NCBI GenBank assembly: GCA_002269645.1
Contig: NIVC01000613.1
Span: 84,834 to 148,833 of the forward strand
Direction of reading: 5' to 3'
DNA length: 64,000 bases
Source: Macrostomum lignano
Lineage: Eukaryota
In this document: piece by piece, positions 40,322 to 64,000 of the stretch
How positions within the stretch are numbered: position 1 is the first letter of the stretch
Layout of the letters: every line of letters begins with the position of its first letter
Position numbers and translations under genes: made by a program
Notes under the pieces: generated by a model
Databases searched by the model: none
Told to the model about the DNA's origin: nothing
Seen by the model: the letters and a program-made list of their open reading frames with translations, nothing else

Positions 40322-41410
40322 TCAGACTGTTGCTGCAGTAACCATGCACTCAAATGGCTTTTCTCCTGTGTGCAGCACTGAGTGCGTAGTCAGGTGAACT
40401 TTCTGGTTGAATCTCTTGCCGCACACCTTGCACTCAAATGGCTTTTCTCCTGTGTGCAGCACTGAGTGCGTAGTCAGGTGAACTTTCTGGTTGAATCTCT
40501 TGCCGCACACCTTGCACTCAAATGACTTTTATCCTGTGTGCAGCACTGAGTGCGTAGTCAGGTGAACTTTCTGGTTGAATCTCTTGCCGCACACCTTGCA
40601 CTCAAATGACTTTTCTCCTGTGTGCAGCTTTGAGTGAGAAGAGAGGCTGCTGCTGAAACCGAATCTCTTGCCGCACACCTTGCACTCAAATGGCTTTTCT
40701 TCTGTGTGCAGCACTGAGTGCGTAGTCAGGTGAACTTTCTGGTTGAATCTCTTGCCGCATACCTTGCACTCAAATGGCTTTTCTCCTGTGTGCAGCACTG
40801 AGTGCCTAATAAGGTTGGCGATCTGGTTGAACCGCTTGCCACACAAATTGCACTCAAATGGCTTTTCTCCTGTGTGCAGCACTGAGTGCCTAATGAGGTT
40901 AACGATCTGGTTGAACCGCTTGCCACACAAATTGCACTCAAATGACTTTTCTCCTGTGTGCAGCTTTGAGTGAGAAGAGAGGTTGCTGCTGAAACCGAAT
41001 CTCTTGCCGCACACCTTGCACTTGTGCGGTTTCGCCTTCTTGTGCACTGCACTAATGTGAGCTTTGAGGTGGCTTTTACTGGTGAACTTCTGGCAAGTGC
41101 CGCACTGGAACAGCCTCTGAACACTTTGAGTTCCATGGTGCCGTGTTGCAGCACTCTTTGAAGCTCGGGTGTTCTTGACTGTCTCGCACTCGTGACGCTT
41201 CATCGGCTGCATCGCTGACTCATTGCGAGACTCGACCTGCTCGACCGCCGACGCTCTGACAGCTTCTGAGTTGGTCGCAGCCGCCTCCTCTGGCTCCGAG
41301 TCGCAGCCCATTCCGTGTGACCGCACATGACGCAAGTACTGCGCCGCTGCCGATCGGGTGCGGCAGAACCGCCTGGGACAAAAGGGGCAGGCGACAGAGC
41401 CCCGGCGCAT
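40322..41410 (-). CDS. C2H2 zinc-finger gene ZF1: N-terminal finger + 7 array fingers, in-frame TAA at 40529-40531, then 2 more fingers
   Basis: Starts [11 protein letters not shown]...HVRSH and has TGEKPF-linked fingers. GGA TAA AAG replaces GGA GAA AAG. Confidence 0.9.
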
Positions 41411-43391
41411 CGCTGAGAAACTGTGGGGCTGCGATCTGTGCGGAGATGCCGATGCTCGAAGCCTGTCTCTGCCTGAGCTGCAATGCGGAGCGGTAGGGAC
41501 TTCGTCACTTTGTGATCCGGGATTGAATTATACTTTTAATTTTTTAGGAAAAATACATTTTTTTACATTTATCCTACAGGAGGACCTAAAGATTAAAGAA
41601 TGTAGAAAAGAAATTTGGTGCCATAGTTGAAACACTTCTCAAAAGAGCATAATGCACTTCTTTCAGAGGTGGAAATTTTGATGCTACTGACAGACCGACT
41701 TACTGGGACTTTACTGCGGCACAATGTGGTCTACGAGCTGTGTGCACGGATTAGGTCGATATTAACTGTACTCGTAGAAGCAAATCTTGAGCCCTGCAAC
41801 TCTTTGTGACTGAATTTAAATAATCAAAATTTATGCAGGCCCAAGCCTACGAGATCTCACGCATCAAATGAGTTTGTGTGTTGGTAAACATGTTGTTTTA
41901 GTAAACATGGCCAAGGTACAATAGCTGTAATGCCCATGCTTTGCAGTCGTTAATGAAAATATCCTTTTCCACAAACGCAAGTTGTCTGGTGCTTCTCCAG
42001 TCTGACGCGTAATTTAGAATTCCTAGGTGCAAATTAACAGCTGGCTAAGGATATTCTTAGTGTTCTGTCTTGCACACTGGAAAATACAGAGCTTGAGTCA
42101 CACCAGCTGGCTGGGGCCAGGGAGCTAAGTACTCATATAAATGCTTTTGAGAAATGTTTCACACAAAAATTGTAATTCCAACTCCATAGCTAATTTCTCT
42201 GTGGAAATATATGAAGAGGACACTATGAAAACAAATTCATTCTCTAATAAGAAGCCATCTAAGAATTAAAAAAGTATATTATAAGAGTATTAACTTGGAA
42301 ATTAGAGAATGGTAGAGAAAATGAGATCAGACGAGTTGCCGCACAGTTATCAGGGTGGATGGGGTGAGTCATGGTGAGGAAGGTCTCGAAGAAGCAACAA
42401 AACGGGACAGAGCACTGTCTAAAATGAGTAAAAGCAAAAAGAACATTCCTCCAGGTGTTGGCATCTTCCTGTGAAAGACTGCCGAAGAGCAGTGTGCTCA
42501 GACGTCATGCACTCGCACAAGCATAACTCAAAGGGGCAGTGATTTGGCTTACAACCAGTCGGATATCATGGCAGGCATGAATATCTGCATTAAAGCGGCA
42601 ACACACGTGAAGCATTTCATGGCAGGCAAAATGCCTTGCGGAGAAGCTCAGTGCGGGAAACACTCCATAAGCGGCTCGTCTGTAGGTCCCCGGACTCTGC
42701 GGCAAGTCTTCGGCCAGCCCTGCGCTTCTCTGTCTCGCTGCCGCTCCGCTACCCGCCTCAATGCGATGCCTCAGCAGAGAACTGCTGCAGCTGAAGCACT
42801 GAATCAACTTGCTCAACTGACTGAATACCCGCTGGTCCCATGAAAACAGCTGCACTCGACAGTTAACAAGCTACATGGCCTATTATAATCAAAACCAAAG
42901 AATCAAAACATCAAGACAAAGATTAAAACTAACAAACAGTTAAAATTTGCAATTGCACTAGTGTAACTTATAAATGCAAGAACAACACGTTTTGGGATTA
43001 AATTTCAGTCTAAAGCATTTACAAGTCGCACAATGCAGACAATAATTGATTAGAGCTAATTATAGTTAAATAAATACCTGGGAAGCAACCGAAAACTTTA
43101 GTAGCAAAAGTGAAAAACTGGTCTAGCAGTACGTCGAGAAAGTGCTTGATTGAAAAAATGCTGCAAATCGATGGATTTTGAGACTGACCGCTCAATGGAC
43201 GATGTAACCAACTGGTAATTGCATCAGCTTTCGTATACATTATTACACGTAAATTCAAGAGGGATCATAAATACGCGTAGATAAAAACGCACTTAAAGGA
43301 TTGCCAGCAGCTCAAAAACACCTGGCGCACAGTGAGCACCCAGACGCGGTGGTTCACTTCTGCAGTCACAGGGAGCGAAGTTGAATATTCG

Positions 43392-44216
43392 TTACACAAT
43401 GTGCAGCCCGGAGTGCCTCTTCAGATGGCTGCCTTGATTGAATCTCTTGCTACACACATTGCACTCAAATGGCTTTTCTCCTGTGTGCAGCCTTGAGTGC
43501 CTAATGTGGCTGCTGCTGAAACCGAATCTCTTGCCGCACACATTGCACTCAAATGGCTTTTCTCCTGTGTGCAGACTTGAGTGGGAAGAGAGGCTGCATG
43601 CTTGATTGAATCTGTTGCCGCACACCTTGCACTCGAAAGGCTTTTCTCCTGTGTGAAGCCTAGAGTGCCTAGTGAGGCTGCTACTGACACTAAATCTCTT
43701 GCCGCACACCGTGCACTCAAATGGCTTTTCTCCTGTGTGCACTCTAGAGTGTGTAGTGAGGTCGCTGCTGAAACCGAATCTCTTGCCGCACACCTTGCAC
43801 TTGTGCGGTTTCGCCTTCTTGTGCACTGCACTAATGTGAGCTTTGATATGGCTTTTTTTGGTGAACTTCTTCTGGCAAGTGTCGCACTGGAACGCCCTCT
43901 CGATGCCCTGAGCTTGACTTTGCCATGTTGCAGCACTCTTTGAAGCTCGGGTGTTCCCGACCGACTCGCACTCGTAACGCTTCGTCACTGCAGAACTGCC
44001 GTCTGCACACGGCTGCATCGCTGACTCATTGCGAGACTCGACCTGCTCGACCGCCGCCGCTCTGCCAGCTTCTGAGTTGGTCGCAGCCGCCTCCTCTGGC
44101 TCCGAGTCGCAGCCGATTCCGTGTGACCGCACATGACGCAAGTACTGCGCCGCTGCCGAACGGGTGCGGCAGAACCGCCTGGGACAAAAGGGGCAGGCGA
44201 CAGAGCCCCGGCGCAT
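43392..44216 (-). CDS. C2H2 zinc-finger gene ZF2, intact, N-terminal finger + 6 array fingers (274 aa)
   Basis: Uninterrupted ORF with the shared N-terminus and Kruppel linkers. Confidence 0.93.
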   Translation of the reverse strand: MRRGSVACPFCPRRFCRTRSAAAQYLRHVRSHGIGCDSEPEEAAATNSEAGRAAAVEQVESRNESAMQPCADGSSAVTKRYECESVGNTRASKSAATWQSQAQGIERAFQCDTCQKKFTKKSHIKAHISAVHKKAKPHKCKVCGKRFGFSSDLTTHSRVHTGEKPFECTVCGKRFSVSSSLTRHSRLHTGEKPFECKVCGNRFNQACSLSSHSSLHTGEKPFECNVCGKRFGFSSSHIRHSRLHTGEKPFECNVCSKRFNQGSHLKRHSGLHIV

Positions 44217-62801: not shown

Positions 62802-63956
62802 TTAAATATTCGTGTGCACCCTGGAGTGCTTAGTGAGGTTGCTGCTTACATGAAATCTCTTGCCGCACACCATGCACTCAAACGGCTTTTCTCCTGTGTG
62901 AAGCCTTGAGTGGGAAGAGAGGCTGCCTGCTTGATTGAATCTTTTGCCGCAAACCTTGCACTCGAAAGGCTTTTCTCCTGTGTGAAGCCTTGAGTGCTTA
63001 GTGAGGCTGCTGCTGTCACTAAATCTCTTGCCGCACACATTGCACTCAAATGGCTTTTCTCCTGTGTGCAGCCTTGAGTGCTTAGTAAGGCTGCTGCTGT
63101 CACTAAATCTCTTGCCGCAACATTGCACTCAAATGGCTTTTCTCCTGTGTGCAGCCTTGAGTGCTTAGTAAGGCTGCTGCTGTCACTAAATCTCTTGCCG
63201 CACACATTGCACTCAAATGGCTTTTCTCCTGTGTGCAGCCTTGAGTGCTTAGTAAGGCTGCTGTCACTAAATCTCTTGCCGCACACATTGCACTCAAATG
63301 GCTTTTCTCCTGTGCAGCCTTGAGTGCTTAGTAAGGCTGCTGCTGTCACTAAATCTCTTGCCGCACACATTGCACTCAAATGGCTTTTCTCCTGTGTGCA
63401 CTCTAGAGTGTGTATGAGGTCGCTGCTGAAACCGAATCTCTTGCCGCACACTTGCACTCAAATGGCTTTTCTCCTGTGTGCACTCTAGAGTGTGTATTGA
63501 GGTCGCTGCTGAAACCGAATCTCTTGCCGCACACCTTGCACTTGTGCGGTTTCGCCTTCATGTGCACTGCACTAATGTGAGCTTTGAGGTGGCTTTTCTG
63601 GTGAACTTCTTCTGGCAAGTGTTGCACTGGAACGCCCTCTCGACAGCCTGAGCTTGACGTTGCCGTGTTGCAGCACTGTTCAAAGCTCGGGTCTTCCCGG
63701 CTGACTCGCACTCTGGACTCTTCGTCACTGCAGAACTGCCGTCTGCACACGGCTGCATCGCTGACTCATTGCGAGACTCGACCTGCTCGACCGCCGCCGC
63801 TCTGCCAGCTTCTGAGTTGGTCGCAGCCACCTCCTCTGGCTCCGAGTCGCAGCCCATTCCGTGTGACCGCACATGACGCAAGTACTGCGCCGCTGCCGAA
63901 CGGGTACGGCAGAACCGCCTGGGACAAAAGGGGCAGGCGACAGAGCCCCGGCGCAT
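62802..63956 (-). pseudogene. Zinc-finger paralog ZF7, ~10 array fingers, many 1-2-nt deletions (pseudogene or consensus errors)
   Basis: ATG at 63956, run of SDSSSLTKH fingers, ends HTNI* like ZF6. Confidence 0.7.
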
Positions 63957-64000
63957 CTCTGAGAACTGTGGGGCTGCGATCTGTGCGGAGATGCCGATGC

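Follow-up and report, generated by a model that had tools for sequence, protein, structure and literature searches.

A tandem cluster of C2H2 zinc-finger genes with fast-changing finger arrays in the flatworm Macrostomum lignano

Introduction

What kind of gene family lies behind a run of co-oriented zinc-finger genes that share their beginning and differ in their finger arrays? The question is raised by a 64,000-nucleotide stretch of Macrostomum lignano DNA (contig NIVC01000613.1, positions 84,834 to 148,833 of the forward strand), which is referred to as a whole as the window and whose positions 40,322 to 64,000 hold seven such genes, here named g1 to g7. A preliminary description had viewed them as an independent invertebrate system that generates DNA-binding diversity, plausibly against transposons or satellites, with the shared N-terminus as a novel effector or adaptor. 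Our analysis shows a new case of a well-known type of fast-evolving gene family. The locus is very probably one end of a tandem cluster of single-exon C2H2 poly-zinc-finger genes that is specific to M. lignano. By analogy with known systems, the proteins would be sequence-specific DNA binders with fast-changing specificity, and we tentatively suggest the recognition of fast-evolving repeats as their likeliest role. For this explanation as a whole, comprising identity, evolution, expression, and inferred role, we estimate a probability of about 0.6.

Results

A six-frame scan retrieved 47 C2H2 finger matches, which fall between positions 40370 and 63540, all lie on the minus strand, and form seven arrays, in agreement with the seven co-oriented paralogs described before. 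Each of the seven arrays is distinct, and the cluster extends past window position 64000. An N-terminal module with the spacing C-x2-C-x16-H-x3-H is present in six of the seven copies (g1 to g4, g6, and g7), with ATGs at 41410, 44216, 48844, 53082, 60363, and 63956. In three-frame translations, an acidic and alanine-rich stretch stands next to the module and is followed by a variable linker and then by an "anchor" finger, FQC[DN]TCQKKF…HISAVH, with the spacing C-x2-C-x12-H-x4-H. The g5 copy begins inside this anchor finger, so the earlier statement that the shared N-terminus was lost from the fifth gene holds. In Pfam searches, g3 matched zf-H2C2_2 with 246 bits (cut-off 40; 1e-75) and zf-C2H2 with 162 bits (cut-off 25.2; 5e-49), and the HTGEKPFE linker occurs in 38 complete finger units, as in Krüppel-type poly-zinc-finger proteins. 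KRAB (PF01352) was absent from g3 and from the extended upstream open reading frame (ORF) at E values up to 1. SCAN, BTB, ZAD, and SET domains were also not found, and the Pfam matches were to zinc-finger families only, as the preliminary description had it. The common protein plan is very probably an atypical N-terminal finger, about 70 disordered acidic and alanine-rich residues, the anchor finger, and 5 to 11 canonical TGEKP-linked fingers.

Only g2 and g3 are uninterrupted ORFs in the window sequence. The g2 gene (43392 to 44216, minus strand) is an intact single-exon ORF of 274 amino acids (aa) with the N-terminal module, the anchor finger, five canonical fingers, and the C-terminus …HSGLHIV directly before the stop codon. 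A single residue distinguishes its product from P0182 (Mlig011269g1), an M. lignano protein derived from transcripts, and an exact look-up of the g2 protein found no identical entry. The g3 gene (47684 to 48844, minus strand), likewise an intact single-exon ORF, encodes 386 aa with the module, the anchor, and nine canonical fingers, and contains the internal two-finger repeat QAWSLSS-RRSNLSS. The module-bearing g6 (59457 to 60363, minus strand) and g7 (62802 to 63956, minus strand; its 5' region reaches the window end) are interrupted by deletions of 1 to 3 bp. In g6, deletions near 60150, 59997, 59774, 59767, and 59748 break the frame, the lesions including two 1-bp deletions and a broken finger. 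In g7, with deletions near 63593, 63452, 63416, 63315, 63264, and 63120, the frame changes several times.

The window was compared with four M. lignano loci of Mlig_3_7 (GCA_002269645.1), namely, NIVC01000975.1, NIVC01001847.1, NIVC01004840.1, and NIVC01003345.1 (L001 to L004, respectively). Mlig_3_7 has better base accuracy than the earlier PacBio assembly (Wudarski et al., PMC5730564). L001 and L002 carry paralogous clusters. The colinear contigs are 97.5 to 99.9% identical to the window: L003 corresponds to 59436 to 64000, and L004 to about 35 to 53 kb, with identities of 99.7% at 35 to 36.6 kb and 97.5% within the cluster. Over the 4.56 kb shared with L003, the window showed 4 substitutions, 23 small indels, and, in addition, a difference of one 84-bp finger unit. 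The indels are deletions in the window in 21 of the 23 cases, about one per 200 bp, and are spread evenly across genic and intergenic DNA. In L003, g6 is intact (303 aa, 7 fingers after the N-terminus), as is g7 (415 aa, 11 fingers after the N-terminus), which in the window is one 84-bp finger shorter (at 62907). Because the indel-to-substitution ratio is high and one direction is dominant, the lesions of g6 and g7 are almost certainly assembly errors arising from long-read consensus. Pseudogenization of the two genes was considered and rejected, since the L003 copies are intact and the differences are mostly one-directional small indels. The L003 comparison points to poor consensus accuracy in 59436 to 64000. 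The g2 and g3 genes, further to the left, are free of frameshifts, so the error rate of the window is uneven. Frameshifts in repetitive genes of the window's assembly are not proof of pseudogenization without a check against a polished assembly.

The g4 gene (51954 to 53082, minus strand) carries the module, the anchor, and eight canonical fingers, including a two-finger repeat. A 2-bp deletion at about 52757, in the segment that separates the N-terminus from the anchor finger, disrupts its reading frame. As 2- and 3-bp deletions occur among the errors of the g6/g7 region, this deletion may be an assembly error, and close paralogues with the g4-type C-terminal tail (…RKSYSSARCSAKDSVKAAI) are intact in Mlig_3_7. 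The g1 and g5 copies are genuinely damaged. The g1 gene (40322 to 41410, minus strand), with the module and eight canonical fingers, is probably a decaying copy: a nonsense codon (GAA to TAA, 40529 to 40531) lies in the linker after the sixth finger, the g1 linker has a 24-bp in-frame deletion, the anchor finger lacks one lysine (3-bp deletion), and the last finger is truncated. Its counterpart in Mlig_3_7 (L004 13168) has stop codons at other positions and only 2 fingers. This damage differs from consensus error because the stop is a substitution, a lysine is lost, the last finger is cut, and the L004 counterpart stops elsewhere. The g5 copy (57974 to 58446, minus strand) is a 5'-truncated remnant with no N-terminus and no start codon, in which one finger with a His-to-Tyr change is followed by three good fingers. 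Its breakpoint at 58446 is a deletion junction abutting the 3' flank of g6, and intact g5-type genes are found elsewhere in M. lignano (P0006, P0153, and P0187). Of the 15 copies with an N-terminus in the four Mlig_3_7 loci, about 10 are intact, and ORF lengths of 270 to 432 aa are retained in most copies. This mix of intact and broken copies is a birth-and-death pattern.

The presence of indel errors in the window also bears on the multiplicity of the genes, which could be an artefact if collapsed or duplicated haplotypes of the polyploid DV1 genome had been assembled as tandem copies. However, the paralogous units within the window are only 72 to 94% identical in DNA, and their flanks and arrays differ. 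The preliminary description would have been undone if the extra copies were assembly duplicates, and this divergence rules that out. In addition, the gene orders g7-g6 and g3-g2-g1 are identical in an independent assembly. We therefore consider an artefactual origin of the tandem copies extremely unlikely.

The finger units themselves showed the excess variation at helix contacts over scaffold that the preliminary description had proposed to look for, and this excess is real. In per-position counts on 38 complete 28-codon units, the proportion of nonsynonymous differences (pN) was 0.48 at contact positions versus 0.04 in the scaffold, where the proportion of synonymous differences (pS) was 0.29. 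Values of pN were 0.33 to 0.59 at positions -2 to +6 except +4, and all zinc ligands and TGEKP linkers were preserved across the 38 units. A minimum spanning tree was built from 69 distinct finger units of the window and the four M. lignano loci. Along it, changes at the contact codons (-1, 2, 3, and 6) were nonsynonymous in 53 cases and synonymous in 6, compared with 47 nonsynonymous and 76 synonymous changes in scaffold codons (odds ratio 14, p = 1e-11). By nucleotide-level Nei-Gojobori estimates on these paralogous fingers, the ratio of nonsynonymous to synonymous rates (omega) was about 0.96 at contact codons, 1.13 across the helix, and 0.15 to 0.17 in the scaffold. The low scaffold values show that scaffold codons are under clear purifying selection. 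An omega well above 1 at the contacts, which the codon-level count had suggested, was dropped because the nucleotide-level value is about 1.

The helices form series that differ at +2, +3, and +6, such as QA[W/G/C/S]SLSS, DSSSLT[K/Q], VSS[S/N]LT[K/Q/R], and FSS[D/N/S]L[N/T/S][T/S]. All recognition helices listed in the preliminary description are present in the window arrays, but their interpretation as a small set of reordered helix cassettes did not hold: the 38 complete units contain 22 distinct helices, 9 of which recur, and it is the whole finger that moves. Units with the same helix share scaffold DNA (95.6% identical versus 90.6%), and Tandem Repeats Finder gave periods of about 168 bp in g4, g6, and g7, which indicates that the moving unit is a whole 84-bp finger or a finger pair. 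Similarly, the near identity claimed for the 84-bp scaffolds applies to the protein and not to the DNA, which is about 91% identical.

Finger number changes quickly, to the point that two haplotypes or homeologues of one locus differ in it. The g3 array has 10 fingers in the window versus 6 in the colinear L004, where the flanking DNA is 97.5% identical, and the g1 array has 8 versus 2, L004 representing a haplotype or homeologue. The flanks of the genes tell of exchange between copies in the window. Over 750 bp, the 5' flanks of g3 and g6 are 97.5% identical, but downstream of the two genes the flanks are unrelated; a 3' flank common to g4, g6, and g7 is 86 to 95% identical, despite which the 5' flanks of g4 and g6 are unrelated; and g2 and g4 have a common 5' flank (97.2% identity). 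A segmental duplication block at 47945 to 53122 is about 93 to 94% identical to 59469 to 63995 and runs from the g3/g6 array through intergenic DNA into the g4/g7 N-terminus. A second block at 43400 to 48093, 86 to 92% identical to 52268 to 58371, comprises the 5' part of g2/g4, the 5' flank, a 42-bp minisatellite, and the 3' array of g3/g5. Because the block ends lie inside arrays or N-termini and the flanks are mosaic, recombination takes place within genes, giving chimeras and remnants. The family evolves by a birth-and-death process in which paralogues recombine unequally and probably convert one another inside the genes. Such events duplicate or delete whole 84-bp fingers, often as two-finger units, create chimeric genes with mosaic flanks, and leave behind truncated remnants such as g5 and g1. 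They would also homogenize the GC-rich N-terminal DNA. Point substitutions build up at helix positions -1 to +6.

Several further observations concern rearranged sequence in the cluster and its relatives. At L003 positions of about 8282 to 9100, the finger linker of a paralogue is fused directly to sequence resembling the 5' untranslated region (UTR) of the family, and the site reads as a recombination junction that joined the array of one gene to the leader of another. The GenBank model of P0153 (L003 8216 to 10838) spans two adjacent paralogues: its first residues come from the N-terminus of the upstream copy, and the remainder matches the downstream gene, which alone is a colinear intact ORF (9942 to 10835). 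The model is either a mapping chimera or a real read-through with splicing between tandem paralogues. The 42-bp minisatellite (55031 to 56832, about 42 copies, with a shorter copy at 46350 to 46696) lies within the repeated intergenic unit of the cluster. It is G/T-rich (TAGGGTGGCTAGGGAGAGTCTTAGGGTGGTTTGGGTGAGTGA) and is present in three of the four Mlig_3_7 loci (L001 3759 to 4905, L002 16490 to 17231, and L003 11736 to 12692), but was not seen in L004.

The N-terminal module was examined for structure, similarity, and constraint. AlphaFold2, with a shallow alignment, predicted a beta-beta-alpha fold for residues 1 to 33 (predicted local distance difference test [pLDDT], 72 to 84) and disorder for residues 34 to 104 (pLDDT about 30). 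The N-terminus alone gave only sub-threshold Pfam matches to zf-C2H2_4 (E = 0.007) and C5HCH (E = 0.022). Its best PDB sequence matches were Sp1 finger 3 and designed peptides with ACPECPKRF, all weak (E = 0.4 or more). The Sp/KLF finger 3 (PDB 1sp1), FACPECPKRF…H…H, resembles the N-terminal finger at this weak level (E = 0.4), but the helix of the module has a 4-residue insertion and the remaining protein is unrelated. The module is predicted to be a degenerate C2H2 finger with an acidic disordered tail and no recognizable effector domain.

Among 13 copies from the window, L001, and L002, codons 1 to 69 had a pS of 0.042 and a pN of 0.038, a ratio of 0.9 from a test of low power with few substitutions. 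Protein-level constraint on the N-terminus was thus not found. In the same copies, pS rises downstream to 0.09 in the linker and 0.18 in the anchor finger. Further upstream than position -120 relative to the ATG, the copies are no more than 54 to 73% identical, and the conserved N-terminal tract has 67% GC versus 52 to 54% in the flanking segments. Because pS is close to pN in codons 1 to 69 and higher in the neighboring segments, these data suggest that the near-invariance of the N-terminus exists at the DNA level and comes from (GC-biased) gene conversion rather than from selection on the protein. The substitution pattern lends no support to the view of the N-terminus as a novel effector or adaptor. 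In every copy, three of the six frames of the GC-rich tract are open, among them antisense ORFs of 125 aa at 43925 to 44302 and 48553 to 48930 (both plus strand) and a +1 sense frame without a stop over 76 codons or more. Wrong-frame translation explains the UniProt entry P0003 ("Secreted protein") and the first part of P0004. This multi-frame openness is probably an effect of composition, and it could contribute to the low synonymous divergence.

The ratio of 0.9 in the N-terminus, the contact omega of about 1, the damage in g1 and g5 that does not come from assembly error, and the breakage of about one third of the polished-locus copies would all suit an array that is largely non-functional, in which decaying neutral duplicates are kept alike by gene conversion and transcription is incidental read-through of a polycistronic unit. 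However, the scaffold is under purifying selection, with zinc ligands and TGEKP linkers all kept in the 38 units, most copies retain their long ORFs, and the frameshifts of g6 and g7 vanish in the better assembly. A largely non-functional array is therefore very improbable.

The family is supported by transcripts in the GenBank annotation, where P0182 is among the RNA-seq-built models. The M. lignano GenBank models were built from RNA-seq, cut at spliced-leader trans-splice sites and poly(A) sites, and numbered as genes within units (PMC5730564). All five annotated mRNA or coding sequence starts that were examined lie 0 to 2 nt after an AG. In four of them, this AG is about 60 to 67 nt upstream of the ATG (…CATTGCAG, followed by C…), and the fifth belongs to the divergent copy at L002 10001, where no more than 3 nt separate the start from the ATG. 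The "partial" proteins begin nearly all at one point (SGRD…/RDGL…). The CATTGCAG acceptor is conserved upstream of g1 to g4 and g6, and the 5' UTR of g2 behind it (44217 to 44285, minus strand) is about 67 nt long. Judging by these starts, the mRNAs appear to acquire a spliced leader by trans-splicing about 67 nt ahead of the ATG, with translation beginning at MRRGS and no coding exon further upstream. An unseen upstream exon encoding an effector domain, which would have overturned the preliminary description, was rejected as unlikely because the annotated starts come after an AG that precedes the ATG by about 67 nt. In addition, the genes Mlig009848g4 and Mlig009848g6 flank a third family member on one contig, and this run of gene names suggests that the mRNAs probably derive from polycistronic transcription units.

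Next, we consider how far the family extends. A search with the N-terminus retrieved M. lignano proteins only, at 81 to 83% identity. An exhaustive phmmer search with the N-terminus and anchor against 1.84 billion representative proteins was swamped by 26,013 hits to generic fingers; among the best 150 hits, a list crowded with finger matches, residues 1 to 78 were aligned by only four entries, all from M. lignano. A profile search with the N-terminus only found two M. lignano proteins and nothing else, but it missed known members and is a weak negative. Database names for the proteins are "hypothetical protein," "Zinc finger protein," and "Protein krueppel," and a literature search by gene identifiers and by flatworm zinc-finger expansion found no description of the M. 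lignano family.

The rest of the window contains other genes. A homeobox gene (2963 to 7489, plus strand) encodes an eh1-like FGIADILG motif in one exon and divides its homeodomain between two exons, near 5900 to 6018 and at 6812 to 7489; minisatellites fill its introns. A gene for a Cys-loop ligand-gated ion channel resembling nicotinic receptors has exons at 12518 to 19026 (minus strand), with Pfam matches to Neur_chan_memb at 12518 to 13093 and 14016 to 14447 and a weak, sub-threshold match to Neur_chan_LBD at 18187 to 19026 (E 5e-4). A 401-aa ORF at 27753 to 28958 (minus strand) begins with an acyl-CoA-binding (ACBP) domain and continues into an acidic DGEN-rich repeat region. Minisatellites are extremely dense in positions 1 to 40000 (for example, 4765 to 6018, 8890 to 9936, 10223 to 10693, 20616 to 21064, 23755 to 24419, 30381 to 32484, 37390 to 38379, and 39108 to 39776); the homeobox, Cys-loop receptor, and ACBP regions are all riddled with them. 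They give rise to long spurious ORFs on either strand and in several frames, in agreement with the published repeat content. An ORF beginning MKSSSLPHKNL… recurs on the opposite strand within the 5' flanks of g2 and g4 (44987 to 45328 and 53840 to 54286, plus strand); it had no significant Pfam match and may be non-coding.

Discussion

The genes are not members of the KRAB-ZFP or ZAD-ZNF families because the defining domains are absent, and they probably do not belong to the FiNZ-ZNF family, which is restricted to cyprinid fish; they share features with each. Like the KRAB clusters of tetrapods, they are co-oriented tandem genes with birth and death, unequal recombination, and variation at helix positions -1, 2, 3, and 6, but they lack KRAB and any evident TRIM28 link and are single-exon, whereas KRAB genes have separate KRAB exons. 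The ZAD-ZNF genes of insects also form invertebrate lineage-specific clusters that combine a zinc-binding N-terminal module, a disordered linker, and a C-terminal array; the ZAD, however, is a four-cysteine dimerization domain of about 75 aa, and the M. lignano module is a 33-aa C2H2-like beta-beta-alpha unit. As in PRDM9, the 84-bp finger repeats behave like a minisatellite, with array length and order varying between alleles, but PR/SET and KRAB-like domains are lacking and a multigene family takes the place of one hypervariable gene. In cyprinid fish, FiNZ designates an acidic stretch of 28 aa at the N-terminus for which no homology is known (Wells et al. 2023, PMC10547256). The FiNZ-ZNF genes are closest in behavior: both families are lineage-restricted and tandemly expanded, with hypervariable fingers and a short acidic N-terminus as the sole common non-finger part. 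They differ in that the M. lignano N-terminus is about 105 aa long and opens with a degenerate zinc finger, and in that the host is a flatworm and not a fish; a sequence relationship was neither found nor expected. Expression at genome activation, positive selection, and transposon derepression have been shown for the FiNZ side only (PMC10547256).

The likeness to KRAB- and FiNZ-zinc-finger genes makes targeting of transposons or satellites plausible. The likely targets would be long terminal repeat (LTR) retrotransposons or tandem repeats, which together account for about 36% of the genome (LTR retrotransposons, 21%; simple and tandem repeats, 15%; PMC5730564). The acidic disordered N-terminus might act as a regulatory or adaptor part, as proposed for cyprinid FiNZ. 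Of the independent invertebrate system envisaged in the preliminary description, the lineage-specific family, the contact-residue variation, and the array turnover are supported, and the effector role of the N-terminus is not. A complete-looking Ty3/gypsy LTR retrotransposon adjoins the paralogous zinc-finger cluster in L002 (2299 to 7838, minus strand). It has a pol with RVT_1, RNase H, and integrase and a gag with a CCHC knuckle, and it has no counterpart in the window, where tblastn gave no match to its gag or pol.

The predicted acidic disorder of the N-terminus is typical of activation domains. This trait, the absence of a repressor domain in Pfam searches, and the lack of transposons inside the window cluster would also suit an ordinary lineage-specific expansion of transcription factors that control host genes, for instance during development or regeneration or in the germline, with a turnover due to relaxed constraint after duplication and no arms race with repeats. 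The contact omega of about 1 suits relaxation equally as well as selection, and Schistosoma reportedly has flatworm-specific zinc-finger regulators of cell fate. On the other hand, the very fast change in array length between haplotypes and the high fraction of pseudogenes would be unusual with fixed host targets, and the pattern resembles clusters of the KRAB, FiNZ, and ZAD types (PMC10547256). We consider regulation of host genes somewhat unlikely and favor repeat recognition only slightly over it.

Several points weigh against the explanation that we favor. The contact-codon omega, from a crude Nei-Gojobori estimate on a spanning tree, is about 1 and not greater, so diversifying selection is not demonstrated. 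The N-terminus, mostly predicted to be disordered, shows no protein-level constraint and may have no effector role. The absence of the family outside M. lignano is weakly established, as a word-indexed search missed known members. No transposon sequence was found inside the window cluster, where the intergenic ORFs have no Pfam matches. Finally, trans-splicing and polycistrony are deduced from the annotation method and gene names.

In its most far-reaching form, the favored explanation would mean that flatworms independently evolved a KRAB- or FiNZ-like system. In such a system, the arrays would diversify by intragenic recombination and track LTR retrotransposons or tandem repeats, the N-terminus would recruit a chromatin or transcription cofactor, and the genes would be expressed as polycistronic, trans-spliced units. 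By analogy with vertebrate families this can be envisaged, and we hold it to be doubtful. If true, polycistronic production with spliced-leader trans-splicing would be an expression mode not described for such families. To our knowledge, functional tests of transposon-coevolving zinc-finger expansions exist only for tetrapods (KRAB) and cyprinid fish (FiNZ). With an N-terminal module of its own, the flatworm family would add a third, experimentally tractable case, as RNA interference is established in M. lignano. Transgenesis is established as well (PMC5730564). In an account that leaves flatworms unmentioned, zinc-finger expansions that are confined to single lineages and correlate with retroelements were shown to occur widely among animals (Wells et al., PMC10547256). 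The M. lignano genes would make it possible to address whether changing arrays directed at repeats are a general animal strategy and what a minimal acidic N-terminus contributes to it.

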